Below are positions 53,306 through 62,300 of a stretch of DNA of 64,000 nucleotides, piece by piece. The DNA is from Camelus ferus (lineage: Eukaryota): NCBI RefSeq assembly GCF_009834535.1, contig NC_045704.1, forward strand, positions 9,424,001-9,488,000, given 5' to 3'. Below the pieces are notes generated by a model. That model was not told the DNA's origin, did not search any database, and worked only from the letters and a program-made list of their open reading frames with translations. How positions within the stretch are numbered: position 1 is the stretch's first letter; every line of letters begins with the position of its first letter. A program made the position numbers and the translations under genes.

Positions 53306-56300
53306 ATGACCGGGGCTGGCAGAGGCCTCAGGGCCTTGGGGAGCCTGGTGCTGCTGGTGAGTGCTCCCAGACTCAGGGTAGTGGGGGTGGGGGGGTCCTC
53401 TGAGAGGAGCAGAGGGGGGCCAACTCCTGGGTCCCAGGAAAGAGGAGGCTGGGGTCCCAGAACTCAGGTCCAGAGTGGGGAGGGACTGATAATTCCCTGG
53501 AGAGGAAGCAAGTTTCTAGGTTGGGGGAGATTGCTGGGGAGTCGGACACCCGGGCTCTTAGACATTGCTACTTCTGCGGTGAGAGTGAACTCAGGTTACT
53601 GGCAAGACACAGGTAAGCTTACGAAGACTCAGGAGCCTCGGCCCCCAGCCCGCTCCTCCCTCAGACCCAGGGGTCCAAGTCCCCAGCCTTTTCCTTCAGA
53701 CTGGATGTCTGGCTCCTGGTCCCCAACATCAGTCTCTTCTTTCATTCCCAGTTTGTTGGTTACTTCCTTGCCTTAGTCTTCTAAGGCTGTATTTTTTCAG
53801 GAAGTGAAACCATTAAGTTTATCTCTCTACCATATCAGTGAAGCCAATCCCAGCTCCTGGGTCCCTGGAGTCCTGCCCCTTCCCCACTCCCCCTGCCCCC
53901 AACACAGGGCACACCCAGAGAAGACAGACATACTATGGGATGACCTTTGTCAGAGCCCAGCCTGCAGGAGGAGAGTCTGTGTGCTGTCCCTCCTCTCCTT
54001 CAGGCAGTGTGACTCGCAGGGTCTGAGCAGAGGACGGGAGGGTCTCTGGCTGGCAGACTCACTGGGGTCAGGGGAGGTGAGCTTCGGTGTCTGATTCCCC
54101 CCCTCTTGGATCTCTCCAGGGCCTGTGCAGCTGGACAGGGGCCAGGGCGGACGGTGAGTGACCCCTGTCTGAGTTCACTGCCCACACAAAGCCATTGCAC
54201 CCTCAAGTCCCGTGAGCTTCCAGAGGGAGGTCTCCATGGTGGGCACAGCGATCCCCACCTGGCTCCGATGGAGCTAGTCCTTTCTGGACACGAGGCAGGA
54301 ACTGGGAGCAGTGGAAGGGACACTCCTGATCTGCTCCCTGCTCACAGTGAATTCTTCTTCCCCATTCTCAGCCTCCAACCCAGTCGTAAACCTGACTGTG
54401 GAGGCCTGGACCAGCAGCTCCATCACCCTACGCTGGGAGGCCCCCAGTGGCCTGGACCAGCAGAACTACACCTACTGGGTCCAGTGGACCGGACGAGATA
54501 ACAAAACCGAGAGCCGAAACACGACAGACACCGTTTTCACAGCGGAGGGACTTGACCCTGGCTCTTCCTATGAATTTTCCGTGTGGGTGGAGAAGGATGG
54601 ACTCACTAGCTCCAAGAAGACCCTCAAAACCACCACAGGTGAGAGGCAACCACTGTTTTTCTTTTTTTCCTAAAGGAAGGTGGCAGGCAGTGACTGAGAA
54701 CACGCATGAGAACTCGGCAGGCCCGTAGACCGACAGAAACATATGGGAGCCACGCTTGTGGATCCAAGGTTTCTATGAGCCACATTGCATAAGTCAGAAC
54801 AGGTGAAACCAATTATACAGAGGTATTTTACTTATCTGAGTAGATCCAAGACAGTATTGCTTCGACATGTAATTGATGAAAGAAAGACAGATGAGCACAT
54901 TCTAAGTGCTCAAGGGCTCTGTTGCGGGGCTCCCAGTCTCCCACTGGGTTTGTATCTACCCTAATGATCATTGGGAGGGCATTTCCACTGTTGCAGAAAT
55001 TCCACTGGAAAGCACTGGTCTAGATCCTTGCTCCCCAAGTGTGGTCCGTGGGTGGGCTGCGTCAGCATCTCCTGAGAACTGGCTGTAAATGCAGAATCTC
55101 AGTCCCATCCTAGACCTCCTGAGTCAGAACCTGCCTTTTAGCAAGATCCCCAGTGACACGTATGCACATGGAAGTCTGGGAAGCACTGTCTAGACCCCAC
55201 ACCCCGTATCTCCTGGACCCGTAGTTCAGGCAGGACTGGGAACTGACTTTGAGGGTCAGCAATGCCCACTGACTGTCCCCTCGTTTACTCCCCTGCTGAC
55301 ACTGAATCTTTCTTCTTCATTTCTCAGCCCCCAACCCCATCAGGAACCTGAGTGTGGAGACTCAGACCACCAGCAGCATCACCCTGAGGTGGGAGGTGCC
55401 TGAGGGCCCTGACCTTCAGAGCTACACCTACTGGGTCCAGTGGTCTGGAGAGGGAGACGCAATTGAGACCGGACGCACAGCCAACACCAGTTTCACAGTG
55501 GAAGGACTTGAACCCGGGACCTTGTACAACTTCTCTGTGTGGGCAGAAAAGAATGGAGTCAACAGCTCCCAGGTGACTCTCAATGCCACCACAGGTGAGA
55601 GGCAACTCTTATTGTGATTCTTTTTTTTTTTTTTAATGCGGGGTTGATGATAGACGATGGTGCAGAGCTGACAGGAGAATGTGGCACACTCCCTAGCCCA
55701 GTGTCTCTTTGGATCACGATGAGAGAGATGAAGAAAGAATATCCATAGGGTTGTGCGTTGGGATCAGTCAGGCTCTAGGACTCTAGAGAACACAGACCAT
55801 AACACTAGGGCGTATCCTCCTGAGCAACCAGGGCTGTGCAGGGGAGTCTTGTTACTGAGTTCTGGGGGGATTAGGTGCTGTGGAATGTGGACACTCTGAC
55901 CCTCTGACTCTTGTTCTCCTACTTCCCAACTATGTCACGGGCTTGAGGATGGAAGCTCAGACCATGAGCTCCATTACCCTGAGGTGGACAGCTCCTCTGC
56001 TCTAGACCTCCACTGTCCAATATGGTAGCCCCTAGGCATTGGTGGCTATGTACATTTAAGTTCATTAAAATTGCATAAAATTGCATAAAATTGCAGGCTT
56101 CGTTCCATATTTTAAATGCTCAAGAGCTCCGTTGAGGGGCTCCCAGTCTCCCACTGGGTTTGTATCTACCCTAATGATCATTGGGAGGGCATTTCCACTG
56201 TTGCAGAAATTCCACTGGAAAGCACTGGTCTAGATCCTTGCTCCCCAAGTGTGGTCCGTGGGTGGGCTGCGTCAGCATCTCCTGAGAACTGGCTGTAAAT

Positions 56301-59300
56301 GCAGAATCTCAGTCCCATCCTAGACCTCCTGAGTCAGAACCTGCCTTTTAGCAAGATCCCCAGTGACACGTATGCACATGGAAGTCTGGGAAGCACTGTC
56401 TAGACCCCACACCCCGTATCTCCTGGACCCGTAGTTCAGGCAGGACTGGGAACTGACTTTGAGGGTCAGAAATGCCCACTGACTGTCCCCCCGTTTACTG
56501 CCCTGCTGACACTGGATCTTTCTTCTTCATTTCTCAGCCCCCAACCCCATCAGGAACCTGAGTGTGGAGACTCAGACCACCAGCAACATCACCCTGAGGT
56601 GGGAGGTGCCTGAGGGCACTGACCTTCAGAGCTACACCTACTGGGTCCAGTGGTCTGGAGAGGGAGACGCAATTGAGACCAGATGCACAGCCAACACCAG
56701 TTTCACAGTGGAAGGACTTGAACCCGGGACCTTGTACAACTTCTCTGTGTGGGCAGAAAAGAATGGAGTCAACAGCTCCCAGGTGACTCTCAATGCCACC
56801 ACAGGTGAGAGGCAACTCTTATTGTGATTCTTTTTTTTTTTTTTTAATGCGGGGTTGATGATAGACGATGGTGCAGAGCTGACAGGAGAATGTGGCACAC
56901 TCCCTAGCCCAGTGTCTCTTTGGATCACGATGAGAGAGATGAAGAAAGAATATCCATAGGGTTGTGCGTTGGGATCAGTCAGGCTCTAGGACTCTAGAGA
57001 ACACAGACCATAACACTAGGGCGTATCCTCCTGAGCAACCAGGGCTGTGCAGGGGAGTCTTGTTACTGAGTTCTGGGGGGATTAGGTGCTGTGGAATGTG
57101 GACACTCTGACCCTCTGACTCTTGTTCTCCTACTTCCCAACTATGTCACGGGCTTGAGGATGGAAGCTCAGACCATGAGCTCAATTACCCTGAGGTGGAC
57201 AGCTCCTCTGCTCTAGACCTCCACTGTCCAATATGGTAGCCCCTAGGCATTGGTGGCTATGTACATTTAAGTTCATTAAAATTGCATAAAATTGCATAAA
57301 ATTGCAGGCTTCGTTCCATATTTTAAATGCTCAAGAGCTCCGTTGAGGGGCTCCCAGTCTCCCACTGGGTTTGTATCTACCCTAATGATCATTGGGAGGG
57401 CATTTCCACTGTTGCAGAAATTCCACTGGAAAGCACTGGTCTAGATCCTTGCTCCCCAAGTGTGGTCCGTGGGTGGGCTGCGTCAGCATCTCCTGAGAAC
57501 TGGCTGTAAATGCAGAATCTCAGTCCCATCCTAGACCTCCTGAGTCAGAACCTGCCTTTTAGCAAGATCCCCAGTGACACGTATGCACATGGAAGTCTGG
57601 GAAGCACTGTCTAGACCCCACACCCCGTATCTCCTGGACCCGTAGTTCAGGCAGGACTGGGAACTGACTTTGAGGGTCAGAAATGCCCACTGACTGTCCC
57701 CCCGTTTACTGCCCTGCTGACACTGGATCTTTCTTCTTCATTTCTCAGCCCCCAACCCCATCAGGAACCTGAGTGTGGAGACTCAGACCACCAGCAACAT
57801 CACCCTGAGGTGGGAGGTGCCTGAGGGCACTGACCTTCAGAGCTACACCTACTGGGTCCAGTGGTCTGGAGAGGGAGACGCAATTGAGACCAGATGCACA
57901 GCCAACACCAGTTTCACAGTGGAAGGACTTGAACCCGGGACCTTGTACAACTTCTCTGTGTGGGCAGAAAAGAATGGAGTCAACAGCTCCCAGGTGACTC
58001 TCAATGCCACCACAGGTGAGAGGCAACTCTTATTGTGATTCTTTTTTTTTTTTTTTAATGCGGGGTTGATGATAGACGATGGTGCAGAGCTGACAGGAGA
58101 ATGTGGCACACTCCCTAGCCCAGTGTCTCTTTGGATCACGATGAGAGAGATGAAGAAAGAATATCCATAGGGTTGTGCGTTGGGATCAGTCAGGCTCTAG
58201 GACTCTAGAGAACACAGACCATAACACTAGGGCGTATCCTCCTGAGCAACCAGGGCTGTGCAGGGGAGTCTTGTTACTGAGTTCTGGGGGGATTAGGTGC
58301 TGTGGAATGTGGACACTCTGACCCTCTGACTCTTGTTCTCCTACTTCCCAACTATGTCACGGGCTTGAGGATGGAAGCTCAGACCATGAGCTCCATTACC
58401 CTGAGGTGGACAGCTCCTCTGCTCTAGACCTCCACTGTCCAATATGGTAGCCCCTAGGCATTGGTGGCTATGTACATTTAAGTTCATTAAAATTGCATAA
58501 AATTGCATAAAATTGCAGGCTTCGTTCCATATTTTAAATGCTCAAGAGCTCCGTTGAGGGGCTCCCAGTCTCCCACTGGGTTTGTATCTACCCTAATGAT
58601 CATTGGGAGGGCATTTCCACTGTTGCAGAAATTCCACTGGAAAGCACTGGTCTAGATCCTTGCTCCCCAAGTGTGGTCCGTGGGTGGGCTGCGTCAGCAT
58701 CTCCTGAGAACTGGCTGTAAATGCAGAATCTCAGTCCCATCCTAGACCTCCTGAGTCAGAACCTGCCTTTTAGCAAGATCCCCAGTGACACGTATGCACA
58801 TGGAAGTCTGGGAAGCACTGTCTAGACCCCACACCCCGTATCTCCTGGACCCGTAGTTCAGGCAGGACTGGGAACTGACTTTGAGGGTCAGAAATGCCCA
58901 CTGACTGTCCCCCCGTTTACTGCCCTGCTGACACTGGATCTTTCTTCTTCATTTCTCAGCCCCCAACCCCATCAGGAACCTGAGTGTGGAGACTCAGACC
59001 ACCAGCAACATCACCCTGAGGTGGGAGGTGCCTGAGGGCACTGACCTTCAGAGCTACGCCTACTGGGTCCAGTGGTCTGGAGAGGGAGACGCGATTGAGA
59101 CCACACGCACAGCCAACACCAGGTTCACAGTGGAAGGACTTGAACCCGGGACCTTGTACAACTTCTCTGTGTGGGCAGAAAAGAATGGAGTCAACAGCTC
59201 CCAGGTGACTCTCAATGCCGCCACAGGTGAGAGGCAACTCTTATTGTGATTCTTTTTTTTTTTTTTTAATGCGGGGTTGATGATAGACGATGGTGCAGAG

Positions 59301-62300
59301 CTGACAGGAGAATGTGGCACACTCCCTAGCCCAGTGTCTCTTTGGATCACGATGAGAGAGATGAAGAAAGAATATCCATAGGGTTGTGCGTTGGGATCAG
59401 TCAGGCTCTAGGACTCTAGAGAACACAGACCATAACACTAGGGCGTATCCTCCTGAGCAACCAGGGCTGTGCAGGGGAGTCTTGTTACTGAGTTCTGGGG
59501 GGATTAGGTGCTGTGGAATGTGGACACTCTGACCCTCTGACTCTTGTTCTCCTACTTCCCAACTATGTCACGGGCTTGAGGATGGAAGCTCAGACCATGA
59601 GCTCAATTACCCTGAGGTGGACAGCTCCTCTGCTCTAGACCTCCACTGTCCAATATGGTAGCCCCTAGGCATTGGTGGCTATGTACATTTAAGTTCATTA
59701 AAATTGCATAAAATTGCATAAAATTGCAGGCTTCGTTCCATATTTTAAATGCTCAAGAGCTCCGTTGAGGGGCTCCCAGTCTCCCACTGGGTTTGTATCT
59801 ACCCTAATGATCATTGGGAGGGCATTTCCACTGTTGCAGAAATTCCACTGGAAAGCACTGGTCTAGATCCTTGCTCCTCAAGTGTGGTCCGTGGGTGGGC
59901 TGCGTCAGCATCTCCTGAGAACTGGCTGTAAATGCAGAATCTCAGTCCCATCCTAGACCTCCTGAGTCAGAACCTGCCTTTTAGCAAGATCCCCAGTGAC
60001 ACGTATGCACATGGAAGTCTGGGAAGCACTGTCTAGACCCCACACCCCGTATCTCCTGGACCCGTAGTTCAGGCAGGACTGGGAACTGACTTTGAGGGTC
60101 AGAAATGCCCACTGACTGTCCCCCCGTTTACTGCCCTGCTGACACTGGATCTTTCTTCTTCATTTCTCAGCCCCCAACCCCATCAGGAACCTGAGTGTGG
60201 AGACTCAGACCACCAGCAACATCACCCTGAGGTGGGAGGTGCCTGAGGGCACTGACCTTCAGAGCTACGCCTACTGGGTCCAGTGGTCTGGAGAGGGAGA
60301 CGCAATTGAGACCAGATGCACAGCCAACACCAGTTTCACAGTGGAAGGACTTGAACCCGGGACCTTGTACAACTTCTCTGTGTGGGCAGAAAAGAATGGA
60401 GTCAACAGCTCCCGGGTGACTCTGAGTGTCGCCACAGGTGAGAGGTAGCATTGTGCACTCTCTTGGGTGAGATTATGAACTGGCCAAGATGGCACCTTCT
60501 CTGGGCTAATGGGAGTTGTAGTTTGAGGCGACCTGCGGTGCGTCCGTTCGGGGGCAACAGAAACTGAGGGAATAAGAGGTGTTTTGTTTTGGGGAAGAAG
60601 AGGATGAGCTAGTTCTCAGATTACTGGCACGACTGGTGGGGAGTGGGGACTTAGAAAACCGCCTTGGATGGAGCCTACTGATTCCTCCTATCCGTTCCAC
60701 CCAGATCCAAGCCCCCCCTCCATCGTGTCCTGCATCAGCGCTTCGGGGGGCTACGGGGTCATCCTGACCTGGTCCTGCCCCCCGGGAGGCTATGAGGCCT
60801 TTAAAGTGGAGGTGGGCAGGCAGCAGTTTTCCCAGAGCGGATCCTCCTGTGGGAAGGGCGTGTCCTTGTCGGGACTCAGGCCGGCTCAGGCCTACGCAGC
60901 CACCGTCACAACCATCTGGGATGGAAGGGAGGCACGGTCTGCCTCCATGACCTGCCGCACTGAGAGCACAGGTGAGCAGAGCCCCACAGGTACAGAGAGC
61001 TACAATGACATTCTCTCAGACCCCGTCAGGCCCTGTTGTGAAGGAGTCTCACCACCCCATGGGGTCCTTTTTGTTTATGTTTTGTTTCCTGCTTTCTGTA
61101 AAACAGCTCCTTTGAGATGTCATTCATATAACCTGTAACAGTCCACCCATTTAAAGTGTGCAACTCAGTGGCTTCTAATATACTCATCATCATTATACCA
61201 TCATCGTTGTTAATTTTAGGATATTTTTTTTACCGTATTTGTATTACCCCTTAAGCCATCACCCCCTAGTTTCGCTAATTCCCCACCAGCCAGCCATTGT
61301 CTGTCTGTAATCTATTTCTGTCTCTATAGATACGCCTCTTCTGGACATTTCCAAAAAAAAAAACCAAAAAAAAACCACACAGTATGTGGTCCTCTGTGAC
61401 TAGCTTCTCTCACTTAGTATAATGCGTCTAAGGTTCATCCATGTTCTAGCGTGTGTCAGCACCTCATTACTTTTTATTGCCGGATAATATTTCATTGTAC
61501 AGATAGAATGCGTTTTGTTTATCCATTCATCCATGGATGGACCCTACTTTTTGGCTGTTCTGAATGGTGCTCTGGACATTTGTGTGCACATTTCTGTGTG
61601 GGTGTGTGTCTTCGTTTCTCCTGGGTGTATACCCGGAAGTGAAATTGTTAGATCATGTGGTAACTCTGTGTTTAACCTTTTGAAGAACTGCCAAATTTTT
61701 TTCCAGCACTGGTCGCATGATTTTTCACTCACCAATGGGACATTTGAAAAAGTCTGAACCTCAGGAAATCTTTGCTCATGTACCGTTGACCATGGTCATA
61801 GGCCTCCCTGGGCCCCCGTCAGTCAGCGCCTAGGAATCAGAGCCTCTTAGGAGATGGGGTCTTTGATCTGGAGACACTGGAGTTTGGTGCACTGAACATG
61901 GGGTGCTCTTCCAGGCTGGGCTTGGTGGTCCCACTGTCCAGGGTACTCTTGCTGAGACAGGTCCTCGTGGATCTTGGGCTGGATCGCTCTTTCTGGTGGG
62001 GACTGTCCTGGGTATTACTGTAGGGTGTCGAGCAGCATCCCCAGCCTCCACCCGCTCGATGCCGGTGGCACTGCTGCTGAAGTTGTAAGAACCTGAAAGT
62101 GTCTCCAGACATTGCCCGATGTCTCCTGGTGGGCAAAACCACCCTCAGTGAGGATCGCTAGTCTAGACCAAGGAAGGGGAGAGTCACTCTAAAAAGCAGA
62201 TTAGTTGGGAAAGTGATGTCTTTGGACCAGGCTCCTGGGAGGAAAGGTTGAGTGGGAAATAGGGCTTTATGCAGAAGCTTTCTCCTTTCCCTTCTCTGCC

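Follow-up and report, generated by a model that had tools for sequence, protein, structure and literature searches.

In the major histocompatibility complex (MHC), introns have reportedly been homogenised and old exon-2 lineages kept, as Cereb et al. in 1997 and Bergstrom et al. in 1998 are said to have found. Related discussion is given in PMC3024992. Concerted evolution is the general model for tandem repeats and has been described for mammalian gene pairs (PMC2720389), and in the KRTAP1 repeats a contrast between coding sequence and flanks within a tandem family has been ascribed to short-tract gene conversion (bioRxiv 10.1101/282418). PTPRH (SAP-1) is an R3 receptor-type tyrosine phosphatase, and the loop patterns of its fibronectin type III (FN3) domains look species-specific in human and mouse (PMC5336234). 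Here we describe a tandem array of FN3 exons that forms the N-terminal part of the ectodomain of PTPRH in the wild two-humped camel, Camelus ferus. It lies in a stretch of 64,000 nucleotides (contig NC_045704.1, positions 9,424,001 to 9,488,000), hereafter called the window. The exons of this array differ from one another far more than its introns do, and this difference goes back to a few short tracts of older ancestry.

The PTPRH array is a clean new example of a known process, namely, concerted evolution, most likely with short conversion tracts. As in the general model (PMC2720389), copies within a species are closer to each other than to those of another species, the copies are mosaics with sharp switches, and copy number shifts between assemblies (5 units in C. 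ferus, 3 in a new assembly of C. bactrianus, 4 in the dromedary, and 3 in the vicugna). It departs from that model in that the repeat unit is one exon plus its intron within a single gene and in that the leftover older tracts lie on the exon. The likeness to the MHC is that non-coding flanks were homogenised by recombination and a short coding stretch keeps older, trans-species lineages. However, the MHC has a strong excess of non-synonymous over synonymous substitutions (dN>dS) and allelic polymorphism, whereas the excess in PTPRH falls short of significance, its copies are paralogous units within a single gene, and there are only two interior tracts. KRTAP1 is the reverse of the PTPRH array because there the coding sequence is homogenised and the flanks radiate. 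The gene itself agrees with the survey of R3 phosphatases in PMC5336234: phase-1 exons encode the FN3 repeats of its ectodomain, and it has a single PTP domain. That survey does not describe lineage-specific tandem amplification or mosaicism of the PTPRH FN3 exons in camelids.

The gene was identified as PTPRH because the translations of the exons in the window equal the C. ferus protein named receptor-type tyrosine-protein phosphatase H (P0282) and because over 8 kb the corresponding locus (L004; GCA_009834535.1, CM020776.1) does not differ from the window. The top homologues in protein searches were all named PTPRH as well. P0282 has 1003 amino acids, with six fn3 stretches and a Y_phosphatase domain at residues 740-973, the PTP domain being encoded outside the window, and when it was compared with the layout of R3 receptor-type protein tyrosine phosphatases it had an ectodomain of FN3 domains only, a single transmembrane segment, and one PTP domain. 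The array spans 54926-60437 and consists of five units with a period of 1210/1211 bp, each made of one 267-bp phase-1 exon with AG/GT borders (E1 to E5) and an intron of 943/944 bp (I1 to I4). The intron that follows E5 is unrelated to I1-I4 and, therefore, E5 is the right edge of the array. Against the Pfam fn3 family (PF00041), whose gathering cut-off is 25 bits, E2 scored 46.6 bits and E4 47.4 bits. An AlphaFold2 model of the array exon (predicted local distance difference test, pLDDT, 92.6) has strands A (6-13), B (18-23), C (34-41), C' (47-51), E (55-58), F (66-75), and G (83-88), and the predicted fold of the domain is a seven-strand beta-sandwich.

Divergence of the exons in the PTPRH array really does exceed that of the introns. 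A first-pass annotation, made from the letters of the window, had reported this contrast from counts of variable sites, and all of its counts were reproduced by alignment. The four full introns differ at exactly three sites, namely, a run of 14 or 15 T, a C/A difference at 55972/57183/58394/59605, and a C to T change at 59878. Exons E2-E5 differ at 10 sites, 8 of them non-synonymous; E3 and E4 differ at six sites (five non-synonymous), and all four differences between E1 and E2 change the amino acid. Over all five exons there are 13 variable sites, 11 non-synonymous and 2 synonymous. The same annotation had proposed a Fisher test of site density in exon and intron, and this gave p=7e-7 (13/267 versus 3/944), or p=0.005 for the interior exons alone. 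It had also held that its observation would fail if more intronic variants came to light or if the exonic variants were consensus errors. On the first point, nothing beyond the three sites was found in I1-I4, but the partial intron upstream of E1 adds four.

The variable sites are clustered, and the 13 in the exons fall in three tracts that lie in unit 1, in E4, and at the 3' end of E5. For 333 bp the partial intron upstream of E1 does not differ from the other units; its four differences all lie in the last 68 bp, so that the unit-1 tract comprises intron positions -67, -46, -37, and -22 and exon positions 49, 81, 144, and 147. In E4 six differences span 163 bp, and the private differences of E5 lie at exon positions 244-259. 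Independent mutations would cluster in this way with a probability of 2.4e-4 in the case of the E4 tract and 1.5e-5 in that of the unit-1 tract. In effect, two or three events thus lie behind the exon variation, and the per-site Fisher test counts them as 13. Two simpler schemes were tried and rejected. A pure edge effect for all exon variants fits the 3' end of E5 only, the unit-1 tract having 333 identical bp upstream of it, and a one-crossover chimera of E1 and E5 does not account for the interior exons because E2 would need several switches and E4 has states that are absent from both.

The clustering also bears on the idea that the differences are new, independent mutations that arose after a very recent amplification and were concentrated in the exons by fast mutation at CpG dinucleotides. 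Six of the 13 variable exon sites are indeed alternatives between CpG and CpA or TpG. However, all 14 intron CpGs are invariant, against six variable sites among the eight in the exon that are CpG or decayed CpG, and the contrast between exon and intron is therefore one of history and not of mutation rate. In addition, the sites show significant clustering, the outgroups mark the CpG-poor states as ancestral so that the changes create CpGs and are not their decay, and the variant states occur in other species, which means common ancestry. We take this explanation to be already refuted by the shared states and hardly tenable at all.

Orthologous loci were fetched by protein searches from the dromedary (L001), the vicugna (L002), and an independent C. 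bactrianus assembly (L003). An older dromedary assembly (L005; GCA_000803125.3, 3035-6900) was not used; its array has many frameshifts and stops, which most likely come from long-read errors left uncorrected. The units in all three species have the same anatomy as those in the window, including a relic of an FN3 exon in the intron, and hence the array predates the split of Camelini and Lamini. The window introns differ by 0-0.2% among themselves, by 1.4-1.7% from those of the dromedary, and by 3.7-3.9% from those of the vicugna. Units within a genome are thus closer to each other than to units of another genome, as is expected under concerted evolution, and this holds within the dromedary and within the vicugna too. 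The majority exon type of the window and the dromedary type have 8-9 differences in 267 bp, whereas over the rest of the locus the window and the dromedary diverge by 0.33-0.62%; C. ferus and C. bactrianus diverge at the PTPRH locus by 0.09-0.13%. There are 11 fixed intron differences between the window and the dromedary, and five of them lie in the first 20 bp of the intron (+7 to +20; window equivalents 56811-56824), directly after the diverged exon block. The hyper-diverged dromedary segment therefore crosses the border between exon and intron. Differences between assemblies in the number and type of units may reflect either copy polymorphism or assembly collapse, which are not separable here.

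The ancestry of the E4 tract could be read from these arrays. From 99 to 261 E4 does not differ from dromedary exon 1 at any site, and yet it keeps 49A and 81A, which are specific to two-humped camels. In the triplet W4/W3/D1 all six consecutive informative sites within the tract side with the dromedary and none of the 16 outside it do (Fisher p=1.3e-5). Host-type bases at 59040 (exon position 81) and 59233 (intron +7) limit the tract, whose length is thus 163-192 bp, and the same discordant ancestry with host-type flanks on both sides is repeated in the C. bactrianus assembly. By its sequence E4 is thus a clean chimera, with the discordant run bounded by host ancestry that marks a gene-conversion tract. 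The tract belongs to the lineage of array copies that filled the whole dromedary array. No donor was found within the same genome, since no other unit in the window has the tract states and FN3a, an older FN3 exon of PTPRH upstream of the array, has the opposite ones; an allele, or a unit since lost, may have served as donor. FN3a (54372-54638) was rejected as a donor because it has the non-E4 state at 99, 134, 145, 164, and 261 and a third base, A, at 147. The intronic FN3 relic was also rejected because only its first 24 codons are present. The alternative in the first-pass annotation of patchy conversion from older FN3 paralogues, together with homogenisation of introns, therefore holds in part: the introns are homogenised and E4 is mosaic (6 against 16 sites), but the FN3a paralogue, with its non-E4 states, was the wrong donor.

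The other two tracts have different histories. In E1, 49G and 81C are ancestral and are present in all dromedary and vicugna copies, and -37C is shared with the vicugna only; -46T, -22A, and 144G are private to unit 1. In E5, 254G, 256G, and 261G are shared with the last dromedary copy, and 261G also with the vicugna; in the 3' end of E5 we see the array's old right edge.

Because the E4 tract is identical to dromedary exon 1 over 163 bp, it could have been imported recently from the dromedary by hybridisation, followed by conversion between alleles. An older C. bactrianus protein model (P0283) has two array exons, both of them dromedary-like, which agrees with such an import and suggests that dromedary-like haplotypes may circulate in domestic Bactrian camels. 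On the other hand, the absence of differences in 163 bp fits old ancestry too, about 0.5-1 being expected at the background divergence. Moreover, the identical chimera (49A and 81A plus the tract) is found at the same position of the array in the wild and the domestic Bactrian assemblies and in several other individuals. Since it is common to both, the chimera would have originated before or around the split of C. ferus and C. bactrianus and not by hybridisation during domestication, and we regard a recent import as distinctly improbable.

It was also considered that the pattern is an artefact of assembly or polishing, with introns made alike in error or with exon variants that are consensus errors from collapse of the repeat. 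Short-read contigs do collapse the array, the number of units varies by assembly as given above, and the private states of E1 lack a second witness. However, the variants are real where they could be checked, and consensus error, the second point on which the first-pass observation could have failed, does not explain the E4 states. In the independent C. bactrianus assembly one unit equals E4 at all six sites plus 49A/81A, another is like E5, and the T at 59878 is present in the last array intron. The variant states equal those of the dromedary, unlike random errors. Contigs of other individuals carry the E4 states as well. The first set of Logan contigs follows the majority path and is uninformative on minor variants; the second query was the E4 exon alone. 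Eight further sequencing runs contain all sampled words of this exon. Contigs from two animals (X39 and X42) had no differences from E4 over positions 1-243, and contigs from X25 and X26 had none over essentially the whole exon. In these last two runs, which are provisionally typed as RNA, a 297-nt contig joins the E4-type exon head to tail, which would be the exon-exon junction expected from spliced tandem copies. The X42 contig also has -130G, as in the C. bactrianus assembly. In the X39 contig the exon states of E4 occur together with -130G, -67C, and an inserted C at -51 (window 58829, 58892, and 58908), the last two being dromedary-like; this contig could represent either another mosaic unit or a consensus that is chimeric because the repeat collapsed. 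In the first set of runs, where the array collapses, the repeat contigs had 3.4-4.6x the depth of the unique flank in three runs, which fits 4-5 units; in run X1 the depths of 4.6x and 3.9x fit five exon-side and four intron-side copies. With these results an artefact is most improbable.

The first-pass annotation had offered diversifying selection on a luminal-facing surface as its other explanation. Under this explanation diversifying or balancing selection would act on the extracellular FN3 surface, conversions that erase exon differences would be removed, and homogenisation of the introns would go unhindered; the trait under selection would be either the glycan pattern or a binding surface of a brush-border glycoprotein that faces the gut contents. 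Several observations agree with it. Between species the amino-acid divergence of the array exons is 8-10%, compared with 0.7% (dromedary) and 4.5% (vicugna) in the rest of the protein, and the E4 chimera is in the second-to-last unit of both C. ferus and C. bactrianus. Several changes make or break N-glycosylation sequons (N-x-S/T): S17N creates one, and S55R, T88A, and N86S each remove one, so that the predicted sequons per copy are 5, 6, 6, 4, and 5 in the window, 3, 3, 3, and 4 in the dromedary, and 4, 4, and 3 in the vicugna. 

As to the protein itself, an unpaired Cys50 is present in the majority type of the window, in the E5 type, and in all vicugna copies but not in E1, E4, or the dromedary. 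On the FN3 model the variable residues are predicted to lie at 17 (A-B turn), 28 (B-C loop), 34 (start of C), 49/50 (C'), 55 (start of E), and 82 and 86-88 (G).

The tests of selection, which included the dN/dS comparison with other camelids that had been proposed, did not demonstrate it. In the absence of constraint 77% of sites are expected to be non-synonymous, and by binomial tests of low power neither the ratio of 11:2 in the window (p=0.41) nor that of 20:3 across the camelid copies (p=0.20) was in significant excess of this. Nor is the excess of exon variation general in camelid arrays, because the dromedary units other than the last (edge) copy have two variable sites in the exon and five in the intron and there is no difference between units 1 and 2 of the vicugna. 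Comparison with the vicugna, FN3a, and other mammals shows the dromedary-type states to be derived; five of the six changes that define this type are from A/T to G/C, and its block goes on into the intron (+7 to +13). Selection on the protein does not explain the intronic part, and the bias towards G/C is a better fit to biased gene conversion; taken together, these features would be explained by a GC-biased process associated with recombination no less well than by selection on the protein. Finally, just two independent interior events serve as evidence. For these reasons we consider selection as the cause of the pattern unlikely, although it deserves to be weighed.

The explanation that we favour and regard as probable is that concerted evolution homogenised whole units and that short gene-conversion-type tracts of older ancestry remain among them. 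The array, with its distinctive relic-bearing intron, would be older than the split of camels and llamas and would evolve in concert by unequal crossing-over and gene conversion. In the two-humped lineage, after the dromedary had split off, whole units of 1.2 kb would have been homogenised, which would make the array introns nearly identical, and three short stretches of older ancestry would have been left in the young units or copied back into them. The unit-1 tract would be retained ancestral states, the tract in exon 4 (163-192 bp) the exon type that took over the whole dromedary array, and the 3' end of E5 the old right edge. The exons would then look more diverged than the introns because of two or three events at the level of tracts and not because of many independent substitutions. 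The mosaic structure itself is directly observed; the mechanism was most likely short-tract gene conversion, and the position of the tracts on the exon would need no selection.

Several points weigh against this explanation. The ratio of non-synonymous to synonymous differences per site (pN/pS) is above 1 in each pair (1.2-2.4 in all pairs), and pN between the majority type of the window and the dromedary type is 3.9%, which is 6-12 times the background divergence of 0.33-0.62%. Both interior tracts (about 200 bp) overlap the 267-bp exon of the 1211-bp unit, for which the chance, estimated from the lengths, is about 0.15, and with a chance this small selection on the position of the tracts has to be taken seriously. 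The window array contains no dromedary-type donor copy, so that a remnant and a re-import of the E4 tract look alike. The private E1 states 55281 T, 55305 A, and 55471 G were seen in the window assembly only. Lastly, since the assemblies of two-humped camels have five and three units, the picture of the array depends partly on assembly quality.

The coordinates of the features are given in Table 1.

Table 1. Features of the PTPRH FN3 exon array and its surroundings (window positions)
Feature	Positions	Strand	Description
FN3a, older PTPRH FN3 exon (first FN3 domain)	54372-54638	+	71% nucleotide identity to the array exon; paralogous outgroup
Left array edge, 3' part of the intron upstream of E1	54926-55327	+	Homologous to the 3' part of the array introns; 54927-55259 identical to other units
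Unit-1 tract	55260-55474	+	8 differences from units 2-5 in 215 bp
Exon E1	55328-55594	+	FN3; S17, P28, G49, R50; 5 N-glycosylation sequons
Intron I1	55595-56537	+	943 bp, T14; FN3 pseudo-exon relic 55925-55996; (TAAAATTGCA)3 repeat 56066-56095
Exon E2	56538-56804	+	Majority exon type of the window array; N17, T28, R49, C50; 6 sequons
Intron I2	56805-57748	+	944 bp; A at 57183
Exon E3	57749-58015	+	Identical to E2
Intron I3	58016-58959	+	944 bp
Exon E4, chimera	58960-59226	+	5' part majority type (49A, 81A); 99-261 dromedary type (A34, T49, R50, R55, A88); 4 sequons
E4 tract	59058-59220	+	59058 G, 59093 G, 59104 C, 59106 C, 59123 G, 59220 G; dromedary state throughout
Intron I4	59227-60170	+	944 bp; A at 59605, T at 59878
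Exon E5, last copy	60171-60437	+	3' end (60414-60431) unlike other copies
Next PTPRH exon, membrane-proximal FN3-like domain	60705-60971	+	Directly downstream of the array

The array introns carry the first 24 codons of a dead FN3 exon (55925-55996, 57136-57207, 58347-58418, and 59558-59629), which is also present in the dromedary, vicugna, and Bactrian arrays, and the variable intron site at 55972/57183/58394/59605 falls within it. The (TAAAATTGCA) repeat at 56066-56095 and the equivalent positions has three copies in the window and two in the dromedary and the vicugna; the extra copy is a lineage-specific gain of 10 bp that is found in all four window introns. At 60438-60971 the camelid array runs directly into the membrane-proximal exon, and the extra FN3 domains that the PTPRH of pig and hippopotamus has between the N-terminal repeats and the membrane-proximal domain are missing in camelids except for the intronic relic. 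Outside camelids, four PTPRH models (P0020, P0184, P0161, and P0010; these include pika, warthog, and hippopotamus) have three to six identical or nearly identical N-terminal FN3 repeats in a row, and from these runs lineage-specific amplification of FN3 exons seems to be recurrent in mammals.

These results carry a lesson of method, namely, that a tiny per-site p value (7e-7) can stem from two or three tract events and that the arrays of sister species can tell new mutation from older ancestry. They also leave room for a speculative and rather unlikely proposal, that the copies are kept heterogeneous. Among their glycan-rich copies, two-humped camels would retain one or more FN3 copies of the dromedary type, without the N53 and N86 sequons and the unpaired Cys50, because mixed FN3 surfaces would be advantageous, for example, against gut microbes or lectins that bind PTPRH. 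If this were true, the FN3 arrays of mammalian PTPRH would be a fast, selection-steered, copy-number-variable interface. To our knowledge, the ligand and the function of the SAP-1 ectodomain are poorly known. The predicted sequons of the array are two-fold apart between sister camels (26 in five copies in the window and 13 in four copies in the dromedary), and natural variants of PTPRH FN3 domains such as these can be used for probing the role of the ectodomain. In camelids the PTPRH ectodomain is a fast-turning, copy-number-variable exon array, and by protein models this is the case also in pika, pig, and hippopotamus.

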